Shown here: positions 7,000 through 64,000 of the stretch, in pieces
Layout: each line of letters opens with the position of its first letter
Numbering within the stretch: the stretch's first letter is position 1
Assembly (NCBI RefSeq): GCF_030144855.1
Contig: NC_082708.1
Span: forward strand, 26,846,001 to 26,910,000
DNA: 64,000 bases
Direction: 5' to 3'
Source of the DNA: Hypanus sabinus
Lineage: Eukaryota
Notes under the pieces: model-generated
The model's database searches: none
What the model saw: only the letters and a program-made list of their open reading frames with translations
Told to the model about the DNA's origin: nothing
Made by a program: the position numbers and the translations under genes

Positions 7000-7560
7000 C
7001 AATGTCTCACCCGTTCAAGCAGAACGACATCAATGAGATAGCACACTCGCACCTCCAACTCTTCACCGGTACCCACCACCTACGGACGCTCAAGCAGAAG
7101 CCGAAGCCGAAGCTCCGCGGGCACCTGGTCACTGGCCAAATCCGCCTATGGCAGCCGACCTTGCACAGAGGGTGCGGAACAACCAATTAAAACATTCCGC
7201 TCTCCGTTCCCCGGAGAGCTCTAACCAATCAGCGTCCGGTAACGGGAAGAGTAACTTCCCCCCCCCCCCCCGGGAAATACGGCTGTCGATAAAGCTGGTT
7301 CTTATTAGGGTCGCGCTATTTTTTGTTAAAAGTTTTTTTTTTACCCTCTCTCTTTTCCTCCCGTACAATTGCAGAAAGCCGAGCTCCCGATTTAATTAAT
7401 ATCAACAAAAACACAACCGTTAGCCCTCCCCCACTACGACGCCGGTTGCCCGGTTACGCCGCGTGCCTAACAACCGAAACAACCCGGATGAAAGGGCATT
7501 TACAGCGTCCCGCTCGTAAGTCGTGCCGAGTTTCTCAATTAACTGACATTATTCACAGGA
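7000..7560. promoter_or_regulatory. CpG-island, probably bidirectional, promoter
   Basis: CpG-dense; CCAAT boxes near 7183 and 7225; X-box-like GTTGCCCGGTTAC 7445-7457; CCGGATG ETS-like site; outward-facing donors at 7010 (-) and 7516 (+, CTC|GTAAGT). Confidence 0.7.
7011..7200 (-). other. Putative non-coding first exon of the minus-strand gene
   Basis: Donor CGG|gtgaga at 7010 inside the CpG island; 5' end not defined. Confidence 0.45.
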
Positions 7561-8036
7561 TAAAATACATCAAATCATTTATCATTTCCTGTCACCTTAT
7601 TCCTGCACATTAACGTCATTTTTGTACATTCCATCCGTCTGTGTATATACGCTAACCTTATGTATATTCGGCCACGCTTACCTATACACTGTATCGTATA
7701 GAATTATCTTTATACTTACATTTATTGTGTTTGTTTTCGTTGTTTTCTCCTTTCTGCTCATTGTGTTCTTTTATTTGTGTTGCATCGAATCCGGAGCACT
7801 ACGACAGTTAACGTCAGTCGTAGTTTACTGAAGAATGATAATACACAATCTTGAATCACGTTTTAATATTAAGTTGGTTCATTAGTCAGTAAATTCGGTG
7901 CGAAATACCAAGAGGAAACATTTGTTAATCAACGCGATCCGAAATTTTAACAGCACCATGTAACTCACAGGCAAGAAACAAAATAGAGTGAAATAAATCC
8001 TATGTCAGTTCAATTATTCAGATTAGTTTAACACGT

Positions 8037-15349: not shown

Positions 15350-17454
15350 AAGCATTTACTAATTTGTTCTGTAATCTGTCATCTTTATTTACCTTACTTA
15401 CATCATTCCTGTAGGTATGTGGCCAAAACTGCACACAATACTCCAAGTTAGGCCTCACCAATGTCTTATACAGCTTCAACATAGCATCCCATCTCCTGTG
15501 CTGAATACTTTGATTTATGAAGGTCAATATGCCAAAAGCTTACTTTAAGACTCTATCTACATGTGATGCTACTTTCACTGAATTATGGACATGTACTCCC
15601 TGATCCCTTTGTTCTCCCACACTCCTCAGTGCCCGACCATTCACTGTGTAAGACCTATCCTGGTTGGTCCTACCGAAGTATAACACTTTGCACCTGTCTG
15701 CATTAAATTCCATCTGCCATTTTTTAGCCCATTTTTTTTCCAGCTGGTCAGATCCAGCTGCAAGCTCTGATAGTCTTCCTCATTGTCCACTGCAATCTTG
15801 GCGTCATCTGCAAATTTGCTGATCCAATTAACCACATTATCATCCAGATCTTGATATAGATGACAAACAACAATGGACCCAGCACCAATCCCTGCAGCAT
15901 TCTATTAGTTGCAGTCCTCCAGTCAGAGAGGCAACCATCTACTACCACTCTCTGGCTCCCACCAAGCTAATGTCTAACCCAATTTACTACTTCATCTTGA
16001 ATGCCAAGTGACTGAACCTTCCTGACCAACCTCTCATGCTGGACCTTGTCAAATGCCTTGTTGAAGTCCATGTAAACAACATCCACTGCCTTTCCTTCAT
16101 CAACGTTCCTGGTAACTTCCTTGAAAAACTCTATAAGATTGGTTAGACATGGCCTACCACACTCAAAGCCATGCTGACTACCCCTAATCAGTTCCTGTCT
16201 ATTCAAATACTCATGTTTGGCTCACAGGCCTATAATTTCCTAGTTTATTTTTAGAGCCTTTCTTAAACAGTGGAACAACATTAACTACCTTCGAATCCCT
16301 TGGTACCTCACCTGTCACTAAGGATAATTTAAATATCTCTGCTAGGGACCCAGCAGTTTCTAGATTTCACTTTCACAGGGTCTGAGAGAATACCTTTTCA
16401 GGCCCTGGGGGTTTGTCCACCCTAATTTGCCTCAAGCCAGCAAACACCTCCTCCTCTGTAATCTGTCTAGAGTCCATGACCTCGCAGCTACTTTGCCTCA
16501 TTTCTATAAACTCTGTATCCATCTCCCAAGTAAATACAGATGCAAAAAAATCATTTAAGGTCTCCCCCATCTCTTTCGATTCCACACATAAATTACCATT
16601 TTGCTCTTCCAGAGGATCAATTTTGTTCCTGCAATCCTTTTGCTCTTAACATATCAGTAGAATCCCTTAGGATTCTCCTTCTCTTTGTCTGCTAGGGCAA
16701 CCTCATGTCGTCTTTTAGCCCTCCTGATATCTTTCTTAAGTGTTCTCTTGCATTTCTTATTATCCTTAAGCACCTCATTTGTTCCTACCTACATATATCT
16801 GCTATGCACCCTTTTTTTCTTAACCAAGGCCTCAATATCTCTTGAAAACCAAGGTTTCCTGCACTTGTTGTCTTTACCTTTTATTCTCACAGACACATAA
16901 AGGTGCTGTACTCTCAAAATTTCACTTCTGAAGGCCTCCCACTTTGCCAGAAAACAGCTGTTCCAGTCTACACTTACCAGATCCTTTCTGAAAGCCTCAA
17001 AAATGGCCTTTCTCCAATTTAGAATCTCAACCCGTGGGCCAGACCAATCGTCCTCCATATTTATTTTGAAACTAATGACACTGTGATCACTAAATGAAAA
17101 GTATTCCTCTGAACAAACTTCTTTCACCCACCCCAACTCATTCTCTAGTAGGAGATCAAGTATTGCACACTCTCTCATTGGGACTTCTATGTACTGATTA
17201 AGGAAACTTCCATGAACACATTTAACAAACTCTATCCCATTTAGTTCATTTATAGAACGGGAGTCCCAGTCAATATGTAGAAAGTTGAAATCACTTACTA
17301 TAGCAACTTCATGTTTCTTGCAACAATCTGCAATCTCTATATAAATTTGTTCCTCAAACTCCTGCAGGTTGTTGGTTGGTCTAAAATCTAGCCCCATTAA
17401 TGTGGTCATACCTGTCTCATTTGGATATGGATTCATGGATTCAATTTGGTTCAC
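15350..17454 (-). mobile_element. CR1 LINE ORF2 fragment (endonuclease to RT)
   Basis: ORFs with SDFNF..IDW, ILDLLL, SDH, VDVVYMDFNKAFDKV, KFADD, LVRPNLEYCVQFW. Confidence 0.85.
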
Positions 17455-19805: not shown

Positions 19806-21409
19806 CAAACCCCATTTCCAGAAAAGTTGGGATATTTTCCAAAATGCAATAAAAACAAAAATCTGTGATATGTTAATTCACGTGAACCCTTATTTAACTG
19901 ACAAAAGTACAAAGAAAAGATTTTCAATAGATTTACTGACCAACTTAATTGTATTTTGTAAATATACACAAATTTAGAATTTGATGGCTGTAACACACTC
20001 AACAGAAGTTGGGACAGAGTTAAAATAAGATTGAAAAGTGCACAGAATATTCAAGTAACACCGGTTTGGAAGACTCCACATTAAGCAGGCTAATTGGTAG
20101 CAGGTGAGGTATCATGACTGGGTATAAAAGTAGCGTCCACCAAAGGCTCAGTCTTTGCAAGCAAGGATGGGTCATGGCTCACCCCTTTGTGCCAAAATTT
20201 GTGACAGAATTGTTAGTCAGTTCAAAAGGAATGTTTCCCAATGCAAGATTGCAGAGAATTTAGGTCTTTCAGCATCTACAGTACATAATATTGTGAAAAG
20301 ATTCAGAGAATTCAAAGACATCTCAGTGCATAAAGGGCAAGGTCGGAAACCACTGTTGAACGTGCGTGATCTTCAAGCCCTTAGGTGGCACTGCCTAAGA
20401 AACCATCATGCTACTGTGACAATTATAGCCACCTGGGCTCGGGAGTACATCGGAAAACCATTGTCACTTAACACAGTCCGTCGCTGCATCCAGAAATGCA
20501 ACTTGAAACTGTATTATGCAAGGAGGAAGCCATACATCAACTCTGTGCAGAAACGCCGGCGAGTTCTCTGGGCCCAAGCTCATCTCAGATGGACCGAAAG
20601 ACTGTGGAACCGTGTGCTGTGGTCAGATGAGTCCACATTTCAGCTATTTTTCAGAAAAAACAGGCGTCGAGTTCTCTGTGCCAAAGATGAAAACGACCAT
20701 CCTGATTGTTGTCAGCGAAAGGTGCAAAAGCCAGCATCTGTGATGGTATGGGGGTGCATCAGTGCCCACGGCATGGGTGAGTTGCATGTATGTGAAGGTA
20801 CTATTGACTCTGATGTGTGTATTAGGATTTTAGAGAGACATATGTTGCCATCAAGGCGACGTCTCTTCCCGGGACATCCATGCATATTTCAGCAGGACAA
20901 TGCCAGACCACATTCTGCACAGGCTACAGCAGCGTGGCTTTGTAGACACAGAGTGCATGTGCTTGACTGGCCTGCTGCCAGTCCAGATCTATCTCCTATT
21001 AAAAATGTATGGTGCATCATCAAGAGGAGAATCAGACAACGGAGACCACGGACTGTTGAGCAGCTGAAGTTTTAAATCAAGCAAGAATGGACAAAATTTC
21101 CAATTGCAAATCTGCTACAATTAGTGTCCTCAGTTCCAAAGCGATTAAAAAGTGTTATTAAAAGGAAAGGTGATGTAACACAATGGTAAACATGCCTCTG
21201 TCCCAACTTTTGTTGAGTGTGTTACAGCCATCAAATTCTAAATTTGTGTATATTTACAAAATACAATTAAGTTGGTCTGTAAAACTATTGAAAATCTTTT
21301 CTTTGTACTTTTGTCAGTTAAATAAAGGTTCATGTGAATTAACATATCACAGGTTTTTGTTTTTATTGCATTTTGAAAAATATCCCAATTTTTCTGGAAA
21401 TGAGGTTTG
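19806..21409 (+). mobile_element. Full-length Tc1/mariner DNA transposon (1604 bp)
   Basis: TA duplication at 19804-05 and 21410-11; 214-bp TIRs 19806-20019 and 21196-21409 containing internal AAGTTGGGA direct repeats. Confidence 0.95.
20167..21189 (+). pseudogene. Tc1 transposase, 340 codons, inactivated
   Basis: HTH region, GRK motif, WSDE, QQDNA, SPDLSPIKNVW (expected catalytic E is K, DD34 spacing); premature TAA at 21073-75, after which the frame continues IKQEW...RKGDVTQW*. Confidence 0.92.
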
Positions 21410-22260: not shown

Positions 22261-23509
22261 AACGGCGTCCCAATGACTCCACTCAGAGTTAGGGGCTTTC
22301 TTCTTCTTCTCTTGCATTCTGCTTTCAGGTAACCTGAGTCCTGGACACCATTTGTCCCACCATTGAGTACTTCTACATGCAATGCTGTCACAAGAAAGCA
22401 GCATCCGTCATCAAAGACCCCGCCATCCAGGCTACGCCGTCTACTTGCTACTATCATCAGGCAAGCAGTACATTAGCTTTACCTCCCAGAACACCTGGTT
22501 CCCTACAACCATCAGGCTACTGAACCAACATAGGTAACTTCACTCACCTCAACTCGAAACTGATTCCACAACCTACAGAGTCACTTTCAAGAACCCTTTA
22601 CAACTCATGTTCTCAGCATTAGTTTATTGCACAGTTTGTCTTCTTTTGCTCATTGATTTTTTGTCCAATTATGTATAGCATTTTGTAAAATTCTATTATT
22701 CTACTTCTTTTTCTTGTAAATGGATCTCAAGGTAGTTTATGGTAACGTGTACATCCTTTGATAATAAAATTAGTAGATCTTTAAACTCAGTCAATATTCC
22801 TAAGTAAACTAACTTTTTTTAATCACGGCCCTGTGTATAGGAATTCGCAGTGTGCAACAGTGACTCTACTTTGATGACTACAAAGTACTGCAGGCATTCT
22901 GAAATGAATGAAAAATTATAAATAAATGTAAGACTTTCTCTCTTATTTTTCTCTACATGAGTGCCTTCACCCAAGATGAATTAGGTTGTATGCCTTTGCA
23001 TAGGGATAATAAAAACAAGAGTAATAGCTTCGGCATTCGTAATGTTTTTGAATAAGAATGCAGCTGGATGTCAGACCAGAGGTGTGATTGATAAAACATA
23101 GGGTAGAGATTCATAGTGTAAACACAACAACAGAATGGATTACATTAATGTACAAATGGAATCTGGAATCACAGGAGTCTGCAGACACTAGGATCTGGAG
23201 CAAATGACAAAATGCTGGATGAATACAGATAGAATCTGCAGAGGGAAATGAACAGTCAAAGCTTCAGGTCAAGACCCTTCGTCTGAACTTGCTACAAGTG
23301 GAGTCTGAAGTATTTCAAGCTTGGTAACGCCAACAGTTGACACATAGAAGGAAGACAAAGACAGAAAGGTCTTACAACAAATTTAAAAATAAGGGATTTT
23401 TATATTCACCTAAGTGGGAAAAGAGCTTTGGGTTAGCATCTTCAGTGAGGCAAATAATGTACTTCTGAGAGTTAAACCAGGGTCTTTTACAGATATTACA
23501 GCATTCAAG

Positions 23510-23515
23510 TTTATT
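23510..23515 (-). terminator. Poly(A) signal AATAAA for the C2orf15-like gene
   Basis: tttatt on the plus strand, about 185 nt past the stop codon. Confidence 0.5.
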
Positions 23516-23699
23516 TTGATTGAAAAATACAACAAAAACATCTTGAACTCCATTTTAAATACATACAAAAGTTTACACATTTCCATATATGCACAGAAGA
23601 CCGTAGGACATAGGAGGAAGAGTTAAGCCATTCTGGTCTGCTCCACTATTCCATTATCCCTCTTAACCCCATTCTCCTGCCTTCTCTCCATAACATAAT

Positions 23700-23984
23700 T
23701 CAATCAATATCTATTACCTCCATGCCATCATTTTCATTAACATAGGAGACAGGTTGCACAACCTTCTCTTCAGATGCTGCTGGATAGAGTTCAGCATTAA
23801 GTTTGATGATACTCATTTCTGTTGTGGGACTAGTGCTAGACAGCCTTCTAGCACTCACTGTTAAAAGGTTTTCTTCAACAATGCTTTGCAAATCCCCTGT
23901 ACTTTCTACATCCTCTGCCTTTGTATTATCTTTGTCCAGGCCTGAAGCAACATGACTGGAAGATTTCCCAGAACATAGCCCCAT
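23700..23984 (-). CDS. C2orf15: C2orf15-like small protein (94 aa), single coding exon
   Basis: N-terminus MGLCSGKSSSHV and C-terminus VSYVNENDGMEVIDID resemble human C2orf15 as recalled (MGFSLSKSATQV...VVYVKESDGLEMTDVE); acceptor at 24083; LIPT1 neighbourhood. Confidence 0.8.
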   Translation of the reverse strand: MGLCSGKSSSHVASGLDKDNTKAEDVESTGDLQSIVEENLLTVSARRLSSTSPTTEMSIIKLNAELYPAASEEKVVQPVSYVNENDGMEVIDID

Positions 23985-25372
23985 TGGGTAGTCACAAAGA
24001 TTAACAGCTCGTTGGCTCTTGTGTTAGGGTAAGATTTGTTCAGAAGTGTTCTGCTGCTTTTTGACTGGGATCCCATAAGAAACCTATTTTCAGATAAAAC
24101 AGAAATTAGAGTGATTAACATACAAGGAGACTGTAGCTAAATTGTTTGATAAATTTAAGAGGTTGTGGTTGAGTTACGGAGGAGGCAGACATAATTATTA
24201 AAAAGTAAACTTTAATTTTACTAATTTATTATTTAGCTTGCATGTGAAAGAACATTTTTTTCCTGAGGAAACAAGAAAGCTTTAACAACATGAACACAAG
24301 ATACTCTGCAAATGCTGGAAATCCAGAGTGACACACATGAAATATGGGAGGAACTCAGCAGATCAGGGAGCATCCATGGAAAGGAATAAAGAGTCGATGT
24401 TTCAGGCCAAGGTCCAAAACTCAGACCTGATGAAAGGTCTCGGCCTGAAACAACAACTCTTTATTCCTTTTGTAAACACAAGGGTTTCTGAAGATGCTGG
24501 AAATCCAGAGAAACACACCATTCCTCCAGTATTTTGTATGTATACTGTTTATTCATTTCCATAGATGCTGCCTGACTTGCAGACTTCCTCCAGCATTTTG
24601 TGTGTGTTAGATGACATGAAAACTTCTTATAGTGTTTTTAGCACAGTCAAATCACTTAGTGTTTTACCACAGTAATTATCATTTTCTTTTTCACCTTTTG
24701 ATGAACTACAACCCTCTTCTCCAAACCACCTACCTACAAAAACAGGCGATTCTAATATCTGGGTCTTGGCAGGCAAATGCGTACCTCACTGGAGACTAGA
24801 TGGAGGTGGAAGACAAAAGTTGTCAGGAAGAGAATCTGGGAGCAGTTATATGGAGACCACAGACCCAAGTACCTGAGGCAGCCCAGGGAAAACACAGAAG
24901 TACAGAAGAGAAGAGCAGTGATCAGGGTAGTCATAGTGTTACTAAGCTGTGGGGTATTGCCAGTTGGTTCAAAAAACAAATGATTGAAAGGAAATGTTGA
25001 ATGATGGAGCAGGCCCCAAGGGTGTTTCGTCCTCTACCATTCAACATTTCCTTTCAACTATTTGGTTCTTGAACCAACTGGCAATACCTCTGAACTTCTG
25101 ACTGCCATGATCACTTTGCACTAAAATGGACTTCATTTTTTTTTGTTCTAATTGTGTTTTATTTCTTGCAAAAATTATATTTAATCTAAGTTTTTTCCTG
25201 TGCTTGGTGCTTATACAGAGCTATGTGCCTGTGATGCTGTAAGTTTTTCATTGCACCCACGCATAACACAATTTTGACTTTGCCATTAAGTAATACACCT
25301 TACTGCTTATCGTGGAGCACAGCACAGAAATGGAGCCTGCAACCCAGTTCATCAATACTGGTCATGATGCCT

Positions 25373-26385: not shown

Positions 26386-28711
26386 TACCAGAGAAAATAG
26401 ACCTATCAAGACATTAATCTGTCATTAAATGTCCATCCAAAGATGGTATAATTTTGCAATGAGGAGAAAGTGGGGTAACTTGTCCAATATTCACCAGGCC
26501 TCAGAAGAATGAGAGACAACCTTATTGATTGGTGGGAAATTCTGAGAGGACTTGTTAGACTGGATGCAAGATGGGCATTCTCCTGGTACAGAGATTGGAA
26601 TCAGTTATCACAGTTTCAGGATAGAGGACTAGAAATTCAGAATTGACATCAGGTGAGATTTTCTCACTCTGAAAATAGTGAACTCATTGAAATTCTCCAC
26701 AACAGATGCCTGTGGAGGCAAACCCACTGAATATATTTAAGAAAATTGATTTGTGGGTACAAGACATCAATAGTATGTGGAAAGAATGGTGATCATGAAA
26801 ATCAGAATCAGGTTTATCTAATGTATGTCATGAAATTTTTGTGGCAGGGCAAAGTTAAGATGGAGCTAAATGGCGACTCCATTGCTTGCATCTTTGGGAA
26901 CCGCTTTACTTCTATCTTCGATATCTCTTTTTTCCCCTTTTCAGGTTGGGGGACGGGCTCTTTTGAAGATCCTGACCTGGATTTACACTGTGACTTTGGT
27001 TCTTTGTGCGAATGGGACCCACTCTCAGTGCCTCACGAACAGCCACTTTTCTATATCCCAAAGACATGGCCTGGAAGACGAACATGCCTTCAGGGTTCTG
27101 GGATTTCGTGGCTCTGGGGACGTGTTGATTCTAGGCTGGTGCCCCTGACTGAAGCGTCACAGGAGAACATGGAACTTCGGGAGCAGTGGGTTAGCTGCTG
27201 GGGGGTGTGTGCCCAGAGAGTTGCGCCTTTTTAGTGCTGACTCTGGGCGCAGAGCTTGGAAAAAACATCACAACAGACTGTTAGCATCATAAATCACTGA
27301 GTTGTTTTGTTATGTCTCCCCTCTCGCTGTGAAATGGGGACACCTCTTTTTCCCTTATTAGGGAGAGAGAGAGTCTGTGGTATGTCGAATTACTGGGTGA
27401 ACGAGTAGTTTTTGGGGTACTGCAAGTCTGTGTATTTTTTAATGTTTTGCTGCACGCTTGAGTACTCAGTGGAGGGTGCTGATGCTTTCTTCCTGGTGGG
27501 GGTGGAGGGGTTGTTGCGTTGCTGCTGCTTGTGAGTGGGTGGGGGCTTCGGGGTTCAAATGTTTTAACTGTCATTCATTCTTTGGGGCACTTCTCTGTTT
27601 TCGTGGATTTGAAGAAAAAAAATTCAATTTGTATATTGTATATATTTCTCTGGCATTAAATGCACCTACTGAAGATGAAATATTAGTCATGAAGCACATT
27701 GAATGGTAAAACAAGCTGAAAGGGCCAATTGACCGACTTTAGCCCCTATTTCTCTACATTTCTTAATGGGATGTTATTCATATCAACAATGGGCCTCAAC
27801 GATGAGGATTCATTTGTACAATAGGCAGTGCACAAACCCATCTAGGGGACAACATTAAAAAGCTTCAGATGATCACAGCCACCTAGAGAAAATCACAAGA
27901 CAACTAAGCTGAATAAGTTCAGAGTAAATTCATTACCAAAGTCTGTTTATGCCACCATATGTTACCCTGAAATTCATTTTCCTGTGGATATTCACAGTAG
28001 ATATAAAGAAACACAATAGAATCACTGAAAAACTACACACAAAGATGGATAAACAGCCATTGCACAAAAGAAGACAAAGTGTGCAAATACTGAAAAAAAA
28101 ACAAATACTAATAATGAATAAAAAAGTAATAAATAATATTGAAAAAATGAGTTGTAGAGTCCTTGAAAGTGAGTCCATTGATTATGGAAATTATATTCAA
28201 CTAATTTGCTAGTGTGTTTTGTGGATGTGGCATATAATGGTTAAAGGAGAATCAGTGGATGTTATGTATCTGGATTTCCAGAAGGCATGCTGCTATGTTT
28301 AGCTGAGCCATCAATCTGCCATTCCACTGGTGGCTCATGAGAGTACAAGTGACGTGCATGACTGAATAAGCAATTGCAACTTTCCTTTTGTCTCTGTGCA
28401 TGGCTGATTGATTATGTTACTAATGGTCCCCTAGGACAAATGGAGAATTCATGGTCATTGCCCAATGCTGGGGGTAGACTATGGTTTCTTTGTATTGATA
28501 TAACTCATCACTGACTTTCTTTACGAAGTGCAGTCTCTGCAAGCACAGGTCAATTAGAGGTTGAAACATTTTGTTCTGGCTGTACATTGAACAACTCCTG
28601 TAATGCCTCACCTTCGTTTGCTTTCTCTAAAACCAAAGGAACATATACAGTAACACACACAAAATGCTGGTGGAACGCAGCAGGCCAGGCAGCATCTATA
28701 GGGAGAAGCAC

Positions 28712-28748
28712 TGTCAACGTTTCGGGCTGAGACCCTTCGTCAGGACTA
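28712..28748 (-). ncRNA. Minimal type I hammerhead ribozyme motif in a Penelope-derived insertion
   Basis: UAGUC-CUGACGA-A-GGGUCUCAGCCC-GAAA-CG-UU-GACA. Confidence 0.6.
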
Positions 28749-30044
28749 ACTGAAAGGGGACATACATAGTACTTCTCTTGGAAGATGATGCGCCCTCTTT
28801 TTGACTGGGTGAAGGTGAGAGAACAGGAAGGACTACCTCCGAAAGTACAGAAGTGAAGCAGTTTTCAACAGTGCATAAAGTATTAATGTTGCCTGAAAAT
28901 TAAACTTTACATGGATCATTGTTAAAGTATATACAAAATGTATTAAATCAGTTTCCCTTCACCTCACCAGTAGCAACTATTTAGTGAGGCATGCATGAAT
29001 GTAGAATAGAAATGGTATTTATGAAAAACTGGAATATTACTATTCTCTTAAGTGTGCCAGCCAATTTCAGCATAAGTACTGCAGGGTTTATTGGAATTGG
29101 CAATAAAATGAGTAAAAGCAATCATGGGTGGGGGTCCAAACATTGTAGGAAAACTAACCAGATGTGAGGCACTGTAAGTAAGAGATGATTTGGTCCTTGA
29201 TGCTACCTTGCTGGATGGCAGACAGCATTGCATTTTTGACAGCATTGGTTATATTTTGCCTTCACAGGAGAAGGCCTTCAATTTTCCTCCCTGCTTTAAG
29301 TACCTTCTAGGAACCTGCTGAATGCTTGTTGCTTTCTGTATTTTATGTGTCACAGGGCAAGTACATGATTTGGGAATATGAAGATCATACAAGATTTTAA
29401 AAGCAGGTTAACTATTACCTGGGTGTGTTGGCCCTTTGTGGTGTATGTGGTGTCCAGGGAGGGGTAGCTCCTCTGGTGAAGGGGCTTGTTATGTCCATTT
29501 TGGGGCTGCTCAATCACCTTTGGTCCCCAATGGACACTTAGCTCTCACAAGTAGCTGTTTGTATGTGACAATAGCTGCACCCCGGTACACCACTTCGACA
29601 GGCAGGCTAAACCAGATGAGGGTAGCTGGCAGCTTTGTGCCTGTCCTAGGATGCGAAGTCAGCTCCGGCAGTCCAGGTAGGTGAGATCTACAGTGAGATC
29701 CAATAGCCAGGAAGGCACTTCTGCAATGGTCTGTGGACAGTAGACATCATGGTCACCCACTGCAACCAAGGAAAACCACAGTTGGTGAAGCTTGTTTATA
29801 CCACTGGCCTCAGACTTCTGAGGTTGAGAGAGTAGGGCTGCCCCGGTGCAATGACTTTTCCACTTTAAAAACTCTCCTGCACAGGTTTCCGGTCATTGTC
29901 AGACACAATGGACAACCACCATTGTCCCTTTACATTTAAGTGCCAATAAGATCCTTTGTGAGACAGCAGAATTAAGATACATAAACTGCCATGCCAATGT
30001 GCTTGCAATAGACCATCAAAATTCTCTTTCACATTCTATTATAG

Positions 30045-50499: not shown

Positions 50500-51130
50500 A
50501 ACAGTGGGGCGAGTGAACCCAGTTGGAAGATTTGGAGAGGGAATTCAGTTGGGTAAGTGTGAGAGAGTACACCCAGATAGAAGAGTTGGAGAAGAGATCC
50601 AGTTGGAAGTGTTGGAGAGGGGACACTCAGATGAAAGATTAGGAGAGGAGACCTGGTTGGAAGAGTTGGAGATTGTCACAGCTGGAGGAGTGTGATAGAA
50701 GGATCCCACTTGGAAAAGTTGGAGAGGGGGCACAGCTGGAAGAGTGTGAGAGAGGGGACAGCTGCAAAAATTGGAGAGGGGGCACAGCTGGAAGAGTGTG
50801 ATAGAAGGGTCCCAGTTGGAAACGTTGGAGAGGGGGCACAGCTGGAAGAGTGTGATAGAAGGGTCCCAGTTGGAAACGTTGGAGAGGGGGCACAGCTGGA
50901 AGAGTGTGAGAGAGATGACCCGGTCAGAAGAGTTGGAGAGGGGACACAGCTGGAAGGGTTGAAAAATGTGAGAGAGGGAATCCAGCTGGAAGAGTTGGAG
51001 AGGGAACTCGGTTCGAATGTTTGGAGAGGGAACTCAGTTGAAAGAATGTGTGAGTGGGATCCAGTTGGAAGAGTTGGTGAGGGGACTGGGTTGGAAGAGT
51101 TGGAGAGGGAACTCAGTTGGAAGGCTATAT
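50500..51130. repeat. Purine-rich minisatellite, ~27-bp monomer with a 54-bp dimeric unit
   Basis: ggagagggggcacagctggaagagtgtga... starts at 50773, 50827 and 50881; degenerate monomers on both sides. Confidence 0.9.
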
Positions 51131-52369
51131 GGTTGGGAAAGAAACAGGGTCAGGGACTTGGGAAATGTGGGGGGTGGGAGAAGAGAGACTGGGAGTTTGG
51201 TGTGTGAGGATAGACCAGGAGGAGAGAGAAAGTGACACAGTGGGAGAAGGTTAACTGAAATTGGAGAATTCAATCTTTATGCCTCAGGCAAAATATGGAG
51301 CTTGTCATCAGTTTTTTTGCCACAGTTGCCAGGATCTGCACTCTTGTGTGTACCCAAGCTTCTGTTTCCAGTACTCATATTGTTGCAATTTTTTAATTAG
51401 TAACTTGTACCTTTTCCTCTTTATTTCTTCCCTTCCCCTAAGCCAGTGTGTTTTCTGCTCACACAGCACACTAGAGGAACTCAGCAAATCAGGCAGCATC
51501 TATGGAGAGAAATGGACAGTCAACTCAGGAACATTACTTCATTAATACAATTTTTACATTATTCAGTTATTTTGTAATTTATACTAATTTGATGTCTTAC
51601 ACTGTAATTTCAAATCCTATCAGACAGCGATAATAAATCTGATTCTGATGCTGACATTTTAGGTTAAGACTGTTTCTCTGGACTTCCAGAACTAAAAGGT
51701 AAAATGTCTGTTTCTCTCCATAGATCTGCTGATGTCCTTCAGTATGTTGTACATTGCTCCAGATCCCAGAACTTGTGGTATCTTGTGCCTCATGCTATCT
51801 CTAGAATATTTCTACAGATGTGCTGTGGAGAGCATTCTGACAGGTGGCATCACTGTCTTATATGGAGGGTCCAATGCCCAGGATCGAAAGAGGCTGCAGA
51901 GGTTTTTAGACTTCTCCATCACTCACAAGCTTCCCCACACTATTGAGGACATGTTCACAAGTCAGTGCCTCAAGAAGGCAACAGCCAACATTAAGGACTG
52001 TCATCAGCCAGGATTCTCTTCTCATTACTACCATCAAGAAGGAGATAAAGAAGCTTGAAGATCCTCACAACGTTTCATGAGCAACTTCTTTCCCTTTGCT
52101 ATCAGATTTCTGAATGGTCCATGAACCTATCAACACTTACCTCGCAGTTCCTCTTTTGTACTTTTCATTTGTTCGTTTTTTGTAATTTATTGTAATTTAT
52201 CTATGTTTTGATCTATAGTACTGCTGCAAAAGAACGTATTTTACGACTTACGTCAGTGATAATAAGCAGGATTCTGATTCTGACCTAACTGTCGGATTTG
52301 CCTGTTTTTCGGCTACAGTAATGGAGGTGGAGCTATCCCAGAATCCACCTCGACCAGGAATTGCCTGTA

Positions 52370-52589
52370 TAACATCCGCAGGGTGTTGCGCGGTACTCCC
52401 GCGTGTAGATGGCGCCGAGCGTGGGCGAAATGTCCGCCCTCGGCACTATTGCGGGAAGAGACGCTGCTGAAGGGTCAAAGCGAAACGAAGGGCGGTTGCA
52501 GTGGAAGCACTGGAGAGAGGATCAGGTGAGGGAATTCGCCTCACAGTTCGGTCTGCTCCCTGCGTGCTAACACCCCCGCTTGGCGCCTG
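52370..52589. promoter_or_regulatory. CpG-island promoter and 5' UTR of LIPT1
   Basis: CpG-dense; YY1-like AGATGGCG near 52407; GC boxes; donor CAG|GTGAGG at 52526. Confidence 0.7.
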
Positions 52590-53717
52590 ATGCCCTACTT
52601 GCATGCCGGACTCCGAGCAGCATGGAGAGGGCTCTCCCCTGCTCGGTGCACCACCCTGACCGCTTTGCAAGACCCTAAGGCCGGCGCCCTCGTCCTGAAG
52701 TCCCTATCCACCGATGTCTACGAGAACCTGGGGCTGGAGGACTGGCTGCACCAGTGCGTGCAGCCCCAGGACCGGGAGGTGCTCCTGCTGTGGAGGAATA
52801 GCCCGGCCGTGGTCATCGGCCGCCACCAGAACCCCTGGCAAGAATGCAACCTGAAGCTGATGAGGCACAAGGACGTTCAGCTCAGCCGCAGGAGAAGCGG
52901 GGGAGGCACTGTCTACCACGACCTGGGCAACATTAACGTGACCTTCTTTACCTCCAAGAAGCGATACGACAGGCGCGGCAACCTGGAACTGATCATCTCT
53001 GCCCTGAGGAGGATTCGACCTCACTTGGACATCATGGCCACAGACAGGCTGGATCTGCTGCTCAACCGTGCCTTCAAGATCTCGGGGACAGCCTCCAAGA
53101 TCGGAAGGACCACTGCTTACCACCATTGCACCTTGCTGTGTAATTCAGATAGCTCGCTATTGTCCTCTGTGCTCTGCACTCCTCATCGGGGTCTGAAAAG
53201 CAATGCTACCCCTAGTATACCGGCCATTGTGAAAAACCTCCAGGAAGAGGATCCCACTCTCACTTGCGACACCTTGATGGACGCTATCGCAGCCGAGTAC
53301 TCAAGGCGCCATGGCCTCCAAAACCAAATCTTGCACATTGATCCCAAAGACACTTTGGTGCTACCAGGAGTTGACAAGTTTACACAAGAGCTTAAAAGCT
53401 GGGACTGGATCTATGGAAGAACACCCACATTTAGTGTCTGTCACACCTTCTCTGTGGACCATAACTTATCGAGGGCAGAAGTTAAACTGAGTATGAACAT
53501 AAACCGTGGCCGGATTGAAACCTGTAACATTGATGTCTTGTCTGACTGGCTGCCATCAGAAATGTGTGACCAGCTGGCCACCGACCTCCTTGGCAGCAAG
53601 TTTTGTCCCACTGAAACGATGGTTTTGGCAAATTCCCACTTAAGGGTTTGTACCCAGGATAGCATACTCCATAATAAATGGAATTTACTTTGTGAGCAAG
53701 TTACAGCAATTATGTAA
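52590..53717 (+). CDS. LIPT1: Lipoyltransferase 1, mitochondrial (375 aa)
   Basis: VVIGRHQNPWQECNL, RRRSGGGTVYHDLGN, FKISGTASKIGRTTAYHHCTLL, WDWIYGRTP and C-terminal KWNLLCE motifs; Arg/Leu-rich N-terminus consistent with a mitochondrial presequence. Confidence 0.97.
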   Translation: MPYLHAGLRAAWRGLSPARCTTLTALQDPKAGALVLKSLSTDVYENLGLEDWLHQCVQPQDREVLLLWRNSPAVVIGRHQNPWQECNLKLMRHKDVQLSRRRSGGGTVYHDLGNINVTFFTSKKRYDRRGNLELIISALRRIRPHLDIMATDRLDLLLNRAFKISGTASKIGRTTAYHHCTLLCNSDSSLLSSVLCTPHRGLKSNATPSIPAIVKNLQEEDPTLTCDTLMDAIAAEYSRRHGLQNQILHIDPKDTLVLPGVDKFTQELKSWDWIYGRTPTFSVCHTFSVDHNLSRAEVKLSMNINRGRIETCNIDVLSDWLPSEMCDQLATDLLGSKFCPTETMVLANSHLRVCTQDSILHNKWNLLCEQVTAIM

Positions 53718-58499: not shown

Positions 58500-59560
58500 T
58501 CAAAGAAAATTTTATTACCAAAGTACATATGTTACCATATACAACCCTGAGATTCATTTTCCAGTGGACATACTCAGTAAGCCTATATATTAATAACTAT
58601 AATAGGATCAATGAGAGATCAACCAGAGTGCAGAAGACAACAAAGTGTGTAAACAACACCCTGATGTTTGAGGGGTTGTAACTGTTCTTGAACCTGGTGG
58701 TGTGAGCCCTGAGACCCTTGTACCTTCTACCTAATGGCAGCAGTGAGAAGAGATTATGGCCTGGGTGGTGAGGATCTCTGATGATGGATGCTGCTTTCCT
58801 ACAACAGCGTTTCACATGGATTTGCTCAATGGTTGATGGCTTTACCCATGATGTACTGGGCTGAATCCACTACTTTTTGTACAATTTCCTATTCAAAGGT
58901 GTTGGTGTTTCCATACCAGACCATGATGCAGTCAATCAGTACACGTTCCACTACACACCTATAGGGGTTTGTCAGTGTTAGATGTCATGCTGAATCTCCG
59001 CAGACTCCTAAGGAAGTAGAGGTGCTACTGTGCTTTATTCGCAATTGTATTTACATGTTGGGCCCAGGACAGATCCTTTGAAATAGCAACACCCAGGAAT
59101 TTAAAGTTGTTAACCCTTTCCACCTCCAATTTTCCAAGGAGGACTGGCTCAAGGTCCTCTGGTTTCCCTCTCCTGAAGTCTACAATCAGCTCCTTGGTCT
59201 TTCTGATGTTGACTGAGAGAGTGTTGTTATGACACCACTCGGCCAAAGTTTTAATCTCCCTCCTGTATGATGATTCGTCACCAGCTTCGATATGACCCAC
59301 AACAGAGGTGTTATCAGCAAACTTGAATATGGTGTTGGAGCTGTTCTTAACCACACAGACATAGGTGTAAAGCGAGTAGAGCAGGGGGCTAAGCACTCAG
59401 ACTGTGCTGATGGAGCTCGTGCAGAAGATGTTGCTACCAATCCAAACTGACTGGGCTCTACAAGTGAGGAAACCCAGGATCCAATTGAACAAGGAGGTAG
59501 GTCTTGGTGCTTATTGATTAGTTTTGAGGTGATGATGGTATTGAATGCTGAGTTGTAGTT
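58500..59560 (-). mobile_element. Rex1/Babar LINE RT fragment
   Basis: ORF LSPLLYSLYT..IFKFADNTSVVG..KTKELIVDFRR..FKFLGVAI. Confidence 0.85.
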
Positions 59561-63257: not shown

Positions 63258-64000
63258 ATGGACAAAGGAGAGCCGTGGATGTAGTGTATCTGGACTTCCA
63301 GAAAGCTTTTGATGAAGTCCCACATAGGAGATTAGTGGGCAAAATTAGGGCACATGGTATTGGGGGCAGAGTACTGACATGGATTGAAAATTGGCTGGCT
63401 GACAGGAAACAAAGAGTAGCGATTAACGGATCCCTTTCGGAAGGGCAGACTGTGACCAGTGGGGTACCGCGAGGTTCGGTGCTGGGACCGCAGCTGTTTA
63501 CAATATACATTAATGATTTAGATGAAGGCATTAAAAGTAACATTAGCAAATTTGCCAATGACACAAAACTGGGTGGCAGTGTGAAATGTCAGGAGAATGT
63601 TATGAGAATGCAGGGTGACTTGGACAGGTTGGGTGAGTGGGCAAATGTATGGCAGATGCAGTTTAATGTGGATAAATGTGAGGTTATCCACTTTGGTGGC
63701 AAGAACAGGAAGGCAGATTACTATCTAAATTGAGTCAAGTTAGGAAAAGGGGAAGGACAATGAGATCTAGGTGTTCTTGTACATCAGTCAATGAAAGCAA
63801 GTATACAGGTACAGCAGGCAGTGAAGAAAGCTAATGGCATGCTGGCTTTTATAACAAGAGGAATTGAGTATAGGAGTAAAGAGGTCCTTCTGCGGCTGTA
63901 CAGGGCCCTGGTGAGACCCCACCTGGAGTATTGTGTACAGTTTTGGTCTCCAAATTTGAGGAAGGACATTCTTGCTATTGAGGGAGTGCAGCATAGGTTC
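63258..64000 (+). mobile_element. CR1 LINE RT fragment running off the window
   Basis: [48 protein letters not shown]. Confidence 0.92.

Follow-up and report, generated by a model that had tools for sequence, protein, structure and literature searches.

A predicted distant orthologue of C2orf15 beside LIPT1 in the ray Hypanus sabinus, and its orientation among jawed vertebrates

A 64,000-nucleotide stretch of the ray Hypanus sabinus (NCBI RefSeq assembly GCF_030144855.1, contig NC_082708.1, positions 26,846,001 to 26,910,000 of the forward strand; hereafter the window, numbered from its first letter) carries on its minus strand a short open reading frame (ORF) that appears to be a distant orthologue of C2orf15 (Pfam family DUF5547, PF17701), although it scores below Pfam's own cut-off. 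We predict that it is a real gene and a new distant member of a known, uncharacterised family. The segment from 24083 to about 23495 (minus strand) would be its terminal exon. The gene faces away from its neighbour LIPT1, a head-to-head layout that would be ancestral among jawed vertebrates and would have been altered by a flip on the line to amniotes. Taken as a whole, we consider this reading quite probable.

The ORF at 23700-23984 (minus strand) is intact and has 94 codons (94 amino acids plus stop). The product begins MGLCSGKSSS and ends VSYVNENDGMEVIDID; its motifs are the N-terminal MGLCSGK and the C-terminal SYVNENDGMEVIDID. The whole coding sequence (CDS) lies within a single exon. A splice acceptor (ctgaaaatag/G, with AG at 24085-24084) sets the exon start at 24083, and 23985-24083 would be the 5' untranslated part of the terminal exon. 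The 33 codons from acceptor to ATG share the frame of the ATG, and this frame is interrupted 14 codons before the ATG by a TAA (24026-24024). The putative 3' untranslated region (23510-23699, minus strand) ends in an AATAAA (23515-23510) located 185 bases 3' of the stop codon, which would set the poly(A) site. An earlier interpretation made from the letters of the window without database searches (the sequence-only reading) had already described an intact ORF with this acceptor and hexamer, pointing away from LIPT1, and the sequence bears it out. The exact product of the ORF has no record in the assembly collection. Directly upstream of the coding exon the predicted intron contains pieces of a short interspersed nuclear element (SINE)-type repeat (24293-24624, minus strand), many copies of which are found elsewhere in the window.

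Counterparts of the ORF are present in a second batoid, in the cloudy catshark Scyliorhinus torazame and in spotted gar, and ORF start and stop are kept in all three. In the second batoid, a genomic contig of 1062 bases (L001) carries an ORF of 92 residues (P0001) that is 68-70% identical to that of the ray. The acceptor and the 5' leader are conserved in this contig, where a TGA precedes the ATG in frame. The ratio of non-synonymous to synonymous substitution rates (dN/dS) between the two batoid ORFs is 0.42, a moderate constraint as expected of a short disordered protein. In another sample of the second batoid ORF (P0004, Logan, 122 aa) the stop codon is replaced by Trp and 30 extra residues follow; this read-through may be a stop-loss variant or come from a close species. 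Together with the orthologues in batoid and catshark and the bat comparisons described below, the ORF itself argues that 23700-23984 is the complete CDS.

The catshark protein XP_072332069.1 (P0003) is annotated as 'uncharacterized protein'. Its residues 133-222 match the ray product at 52% identity, and these C-terminal 90 residues are the counterpart of the ray ORF. When the catshark protein was compared with the window by tblastn, the match opened exactly at 24083, at catshark residue 100. The coding range of the catshark gene spans 13.4 kb, with its last exon beginning at the ray acceptor position. Unlike the ray ORF, the catshark model has 132 additional N-terminal residues contributed by upstream exons. 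Since stops close the upstream frame in both batoids, this extension is probably a longest-ORF artefact, and the window contains nothing that corresponds to its first 99 residues. Both batoids carry the in-frame stops despite a leader that is similar to catshark at the amino acid level from acceptor to ATG (ray 23985-24083, minus strand, VSYGIPVKKQQNTSEQIL; L001 487-582, ITYGIPKEKEQNTFERIL; P0003 100-132, LSCGIFVGKEHTTFQRN). Possible readings are a conserved leader, an upstream ORF or a once-coding stretch. The gar orthologue, MGLCLENSS...DFVKENDGLQLLDLEECER, is unannotated. It encodes 75 residues (L004 7355-7582, minus strand) inside a CpG island of its own (7201-7800); a GTAAGT donor is present near 7795, and 12 bases separate an acceptor from the ATG that follows it.

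The relationship to C2orf15, which the sequence-only reading had proposed, was upheld by profile alignment with hhalign, by tblastn, by hidden Markov models (HMMs) with shuffle controls and by the LIPT1 neighbour. The gathering score of DUF5547 in Pfam is 25 bits. In Pfam searches of the second batoid proteins (P0001, P0004) and the catshark protein, DUF5547 was the sole family matched, at 13-16 bits (E 0.011-0.09); these alignments cover profile positions 83-121 of 122 and reach the protein end. The gar ORF gave no match to DUF5547. A bat protein (Myotis yumanensis XP_070252781.1, 91 residues, NCBI name 'uncharacterized protein C2orf15 homolog') matches DUF5547 at E 1.1e-49 (168 bits). hhalign of the elasmobranch alignment against this bat homologue gave E 3.3e-5 over the last 27 residues. 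With tblastn, the top match of the bat protein in the window was the C-terminus of the ray ORF (E 7.6e-4, the next match having E 5.1), and in the gar locus it was the gar ORF. HMMs built from the fish sequences scored the bat protein at about 20 bits, and none of 2000 composition-matched shuffles reached the real score (maxima 9.4-12.6). An elasmobranch-only HMM scored the gar ORF at 14.8 bits, as compared to a shuffle maximum of 8.2. A search with the ORF, a phmmer search and a three-sequence profile search of large protein collections returned only elasmobranch relatives. Two candidates were discarded: a match of the ray ORF to DUF4623 (E 0.003), a 450-position profile that did not recur in the orthologues and is attributed to chance, and P0002, a tandem-repeat protein that was a spurious match from the collection searches.

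The ray protein and C2orf15/DUF5547 proteins such as the bat homologue share a length of about 90 residues, a start of Met-Gly and then Ser/Cys and Lys, the motif [YF]V[NK]E[NS]DG...D.[DE] at the extreme C-terminus, a single-exon CDS and the LIPT1 neighbour. They differ in overall identity, which is only about 26% between bat and ray, in orientation to LIPT1 and in the ray score below the Pfam cut-off. Because the profile and shuffle tests, the length, both ends, the single-exon CDS and the LIPT1 neighbour point the same way when taken together, the ray ORF is accepted as C2orf15. A lineage-specific small gene, unrelated to C2orf15 and lying near LIPT1 by chance, would agree with the lack of a significant single-sequence match to mammalian C2orf15 and of a Pfam match for the ray ORF of its own. 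It is opposed by the profile and shuffle results, by the common start and end motifs, length and single-exon CDS, and by the presence of LIPT1 next door in four lineages; we hold it to be extremely unlikely.

With the ray ORF taken as C2orf15, its orientation can be compared among vertebrates. The LIPT1 CDS is a single ORF of 375 aa on the plus strand (52590-53717). It is 95% identical to Mobula LIPT1, and its exact product is recorded in GCA_030144855.1. In the ray, C2orf15 (minus strand) and LIPT1 (plus strand) are 28.6 kb apart, and no genes downstream of LIPT1 are seen in the window. Spotted gar has the same head-to-head layout, with C2orf15 on the minus strand and its ATG 2.4 kb from that of LIPT1 (plus strand), followed downstream by MITD1 (minus strand) and MRPL30 (plus strand). 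In the bat, C2orf15 is on the plus strand 7.7 kb upstream of LIPT1 (plus strand), with MITD1 (minus strand) downstream. The sand lizard has C2orf15 on the plus strand about 2 kb upstream of LIPT1 (plus strand), and MITD1 (minus strand) and MRPL30 (plus strand) follow. The distance between the two genes is thus 2-8 kb in gar, lizard and bat versus 28.6 kb in the ray. The lizard homologue (L008 7749-8022, plus strand) is unannotated and split over two frames at a T run near 7875-7885, its halves MGNCCSK... and ...FVKENDGLEITDVQ lying in different frames, which may reflect decay of the gene or a homopolymer error introduced during assembly. Further upstream in the lizard, a gene for a coiled-coil protein of 920 residues, probably TSGA10, begins on the minus strand.

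The sequence-only reading had held the ray orientation to be opposite to the mammalian layout, and a comparison with bat and lizard agrees with this. It had also suggested that the segment was inverted in one lineage. A small flip is indeed supported, but most simply not in the ray lineage. That reading had named a shared orientation in other vertebrates as evidence against itself, and gar shows just this orientation. The order and strands of the LIPT1-MITD1-MRPL30 block are unchanged in gar, ostrich, lizard and bat; since this layout is constant, what varies is the C2orf15 segment. As ray and gar agree, the head-to-head layout is most simply ancestral to jawed vertebrates, and the flip most simply occurred on the line to amniotes. 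The two could also have flipped the segment independently from an ancestral tandem layout as in amniotes. Only two non-amniote lineages are readable, and small inversions between close promoters do recur; yet this requires two events instead of one and has no other data in its favour, and we regard it as unlikely. A mis-assembled inversion, raised earlier as a concern, no longer needs to be feared: gar shares the orientation, and the window contains no N and hence no scaffold gap between the C2orf15 exon and LIPT1.

The agreement with gar also bears on a further proposal of the sequence-only reading, in which the ORF sits in an intron of a dead host gene (implicitly TSGA10) on the minus strand and survives as its alternative terminal exon after an inversion in the ray lineage. 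Two phase-compatible 'fossil exons' on the minus strand had been claimed to flank the ORF, one upstream (24668-24872) and one of 34 nt, AT-rich, downstream (23376-23409). The GT donor after 24668 and the AG acceptor before 23409 do exist in the sequence, but they are of chance quality. Of the 3581 minus-strand GT sites in the window, scored by a simple donor matrix, 417-467 are at least as good as the two claimed donors (467 for the donor at 24668, which has 3.5 bits), and a pyrimidine tract as good as that at 23409 precedes 396 of 4455 minus-strand AG sites. Splice-like sites of the claimed quality thus occur about every 150 bases on this strand. The upstream piece has stops in all three frames, both acceptor and donor of the downstream piece are at chance level, and no homology was found for either.

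Other points speak for a dead host: an exon-like piece with a good donor at 28612-28893, and the long TSGA10-like coiled-coil gene that amniotes have on the strand opposite LIPT1. Between 20 and 53 kb, however, no open segment of the minus strand resembles a coiled-coil exon. When the window was compared by tblastx with the loci of elephant shark, gar, ostrich, toad and bat, LIPT1 and transposon pieces alone were detected, and the ray gene list for 42.6-63.7 kb contains no minus-strand gene. A search for TSGA10 or coiled-coil remnants on the minus strand also found nothing, a weak blank as it relied on motifs in place of a TSGA10 protein query, and a heavily decayed TSGA10 may have escaped it. 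Recognisable same-strand host exons were found on neither side of the ORF, and with the broken frames, the chance splice motifs and the orientation shared by gar, the idea that C2orf15 serves a dead host gene as alternative terminal exon is unsupported and the model very unlikely. The claimed fossil exons are chance splice-like motifs or, at most, non-coding exons of C2orf15; the piece at 24668-24872 might serve C2orf15 as a non-coding 5' exon or have no significance. Just upstream of it lies an inverted repeat (24944-25009 and 25032-25097; 66 bases, 85% complementary, 22-base loop), from which ORFs on both strands read ...GIASWFK[KN]Q[MI][IV]ERKC. It is probably a small hairpin element.

C2orf15 of the ray would be a gene with a transcript of its own. 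The conserved acceptor at 24083, the upstream in-frame stops, the upstream exons of the catshark model and the contiguous bat CDS point to a single terminal coding exon preceded by one or more 5' exons. Because the acceptor is conserved and the catshark model has upstream exons, the mRNA would begin in at least one non-coding exon upstream, toward LIPT1. The sole CpG island between the C2orf15 exon and LIPT1 covers the LIPT1 start (52201-53000), and a bidirectional promoter shared with LIPT1, 28 kb away, is possible. Literature searches on DUF5547, PF17701 and a TSGA10/LIPT1 bidirectional promoter brought up nothing useful. The exon-like piece at 28612-28893 (minus strand) has the donor AAG/GTGAGG and a SINE inserted at about 28649-28747. 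It contains a 53-codon frame once the SINE is removed, which is not significant (we estimate about 0.1 for one frame out of three). This piece may be due to chance or belong to C2orf15 as a non-coding 5' exon. If any of the exon-like pieces are real, they are most economically C2orf15's own non-coding 5' exons, because such exons tolerate stops and a SINE.

The product of the ray gene would be a short, fast-evolving and probably disordered protein of about 90 residues; a structure model of the catshark protein in the atlas has a pLDDT (predicted local distance difference test) of 0.33. Conservation is seen at both ends. The C-terminus reads [YF]V[NK]E[NS]DG[ILM][EQ]xxD[ILV][DEQ] and lies at, or within 5 residues of, the end of the protein. 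The N-terminus is MGLCSGK in ray and catshark, MGLCYGK in the second batoid, MGNCCSK in the lizard, MGFSVSK in the bat and MGLCLEN in gar. The sequences agree with an acylation motif (Gly2, a small residue at 6, a basic residue at 7-8 and a nearby Cys), to which gar fits less well. The Met-Gly start, Cys4 and Lys7 would match the N-myristoyltransferase consensus plus a palmitoylation site and may thereby provide a lipid membrane anchor. C2orf15 would then be a lipid-anchored, otherwise disordered acidic protein with the conserved C-terminal motif as a likely binding site. The ray start MGLCSGK is like those of the dually acylated Src-family SH4 motifs, BAALC and herpesvirus UL11 (MGxC start). 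This likeness, seen among neighbours in the atlas feature search with scores below 0.8, is one of motif and composition without homology, and that search returned MG-start look-alikes only. A Grb2-type pYxN reading of 'YVNEN' was ruled out, as F and K occupy these positions in gar and lizard.

Several observations weigh against the reading favoured here. Even at E 10 the ray ORF gave no DUF5547 match in Pfam, and phmmer over 1.84 billion representatives retrieved no mammalian C2orf15 at E 0.001. Similarity to mammalian C2orf15 covers only some 10 residues at the N-terminus and some 27 at the C-terminus. Searches within 10 kb of LIPT1 yielded no C2orf15 homologue in elephant shark, ostrich or spadefoot toad, and the polarity of the inversion is set by two outgroup lineages only, ray and gar. 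Acylation is read from the motif alone, and gar has at position 6 a Glu, which is unfavourable for myristoylation. The AATAAA is not conserved at the equivalent position in contig L001, and the ray gene as such is predicted from genomic sequence alone.

The wider surroundings of LIPT1 differ among lineages. In elephant shark, a single-exon KCTD11/21-type BTB gene, not MITD1, lies 4.5 kb after LIPT1 (L003 15612-16325, plus strand). ALG8 and KCTD21 adjoin each other on human 11q14. Given this adjacency and the elephant shark neighbour, LIPT1 of cartilaginous fishes may sit in a different neighbourhood, perhaps without TSGA10. The ray annotation over 42590-63717 lists, on the plus strand, a gene with an Alg6_Alg8 product of 523 residues; the coding range of this gene includes LIPT1 and extends 10 kb to either side. 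A motif-based search of the window for ALG8 coding sequence found nothing, and the manta and elephant shark gene lists show no Alg6_Alg8-type gene around LIPT1. The ray model would owe its extent either to a very long intron or to an artefact of annotation. Much of the window consists of transposon and SINE debris. It includes an uninterrupted 306-codon ORF for a Tc1/mariner-type transposase (20155-21075, plus strand; DDE_3, HTH_Tnp_Tc3_2) and fragments of long interspersed nuclear elements with endonuclease-reverse transcriptase domain and RVT_1 pieces (16789-17454 and 59025-59396, minus strand; 63275-63733, plus strand). Just upstream of the LIPT1 CpG island, tandem copies of a unit of about 19 codons (EGAQLEECDRRVPVGNVG; 50692-51207, plus strand) lie in a G-skewed stretch and have no Pfam match.

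A bolder idea, which we think rather unlikely, is that C2orf15 and LIPT1 are an ancient head-to-head pair kept for more than 400 million years amid changing surroundings (ALG8/KCTD-type genes in cartilaginous fishes; TSGA10, MITD1 and MRPL30 in bony vertebrates), implying shared regulation or a functional link. If true, a lipid-anchored microprotein would be linked to a lipoylation enzyme, and the flip in amniotes, by placing C2orf15 antisense to the TSGA10 side, would have rewired this connection. The point on gene order is in itself minor: a small local inversion toward amniotes and not a peculiarity of the ray. For annotation, our results suggest that the N-terminus given for the catshark protein is too long and that the genes of gar and ray lack an annotation. 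The human protein C2orf15 is uncharacterised, and the searches made here returned for it no named relative outside mammals. Orthologues in rays, sharks and gar would date it to the jawed-vertebrate ancestor. The parts that selection appears to have kept, the Met-Gly-(Cys) start of the putative lipid anchor and the acidic C-terminal motif, would be natural entry points for a functional study of this family.

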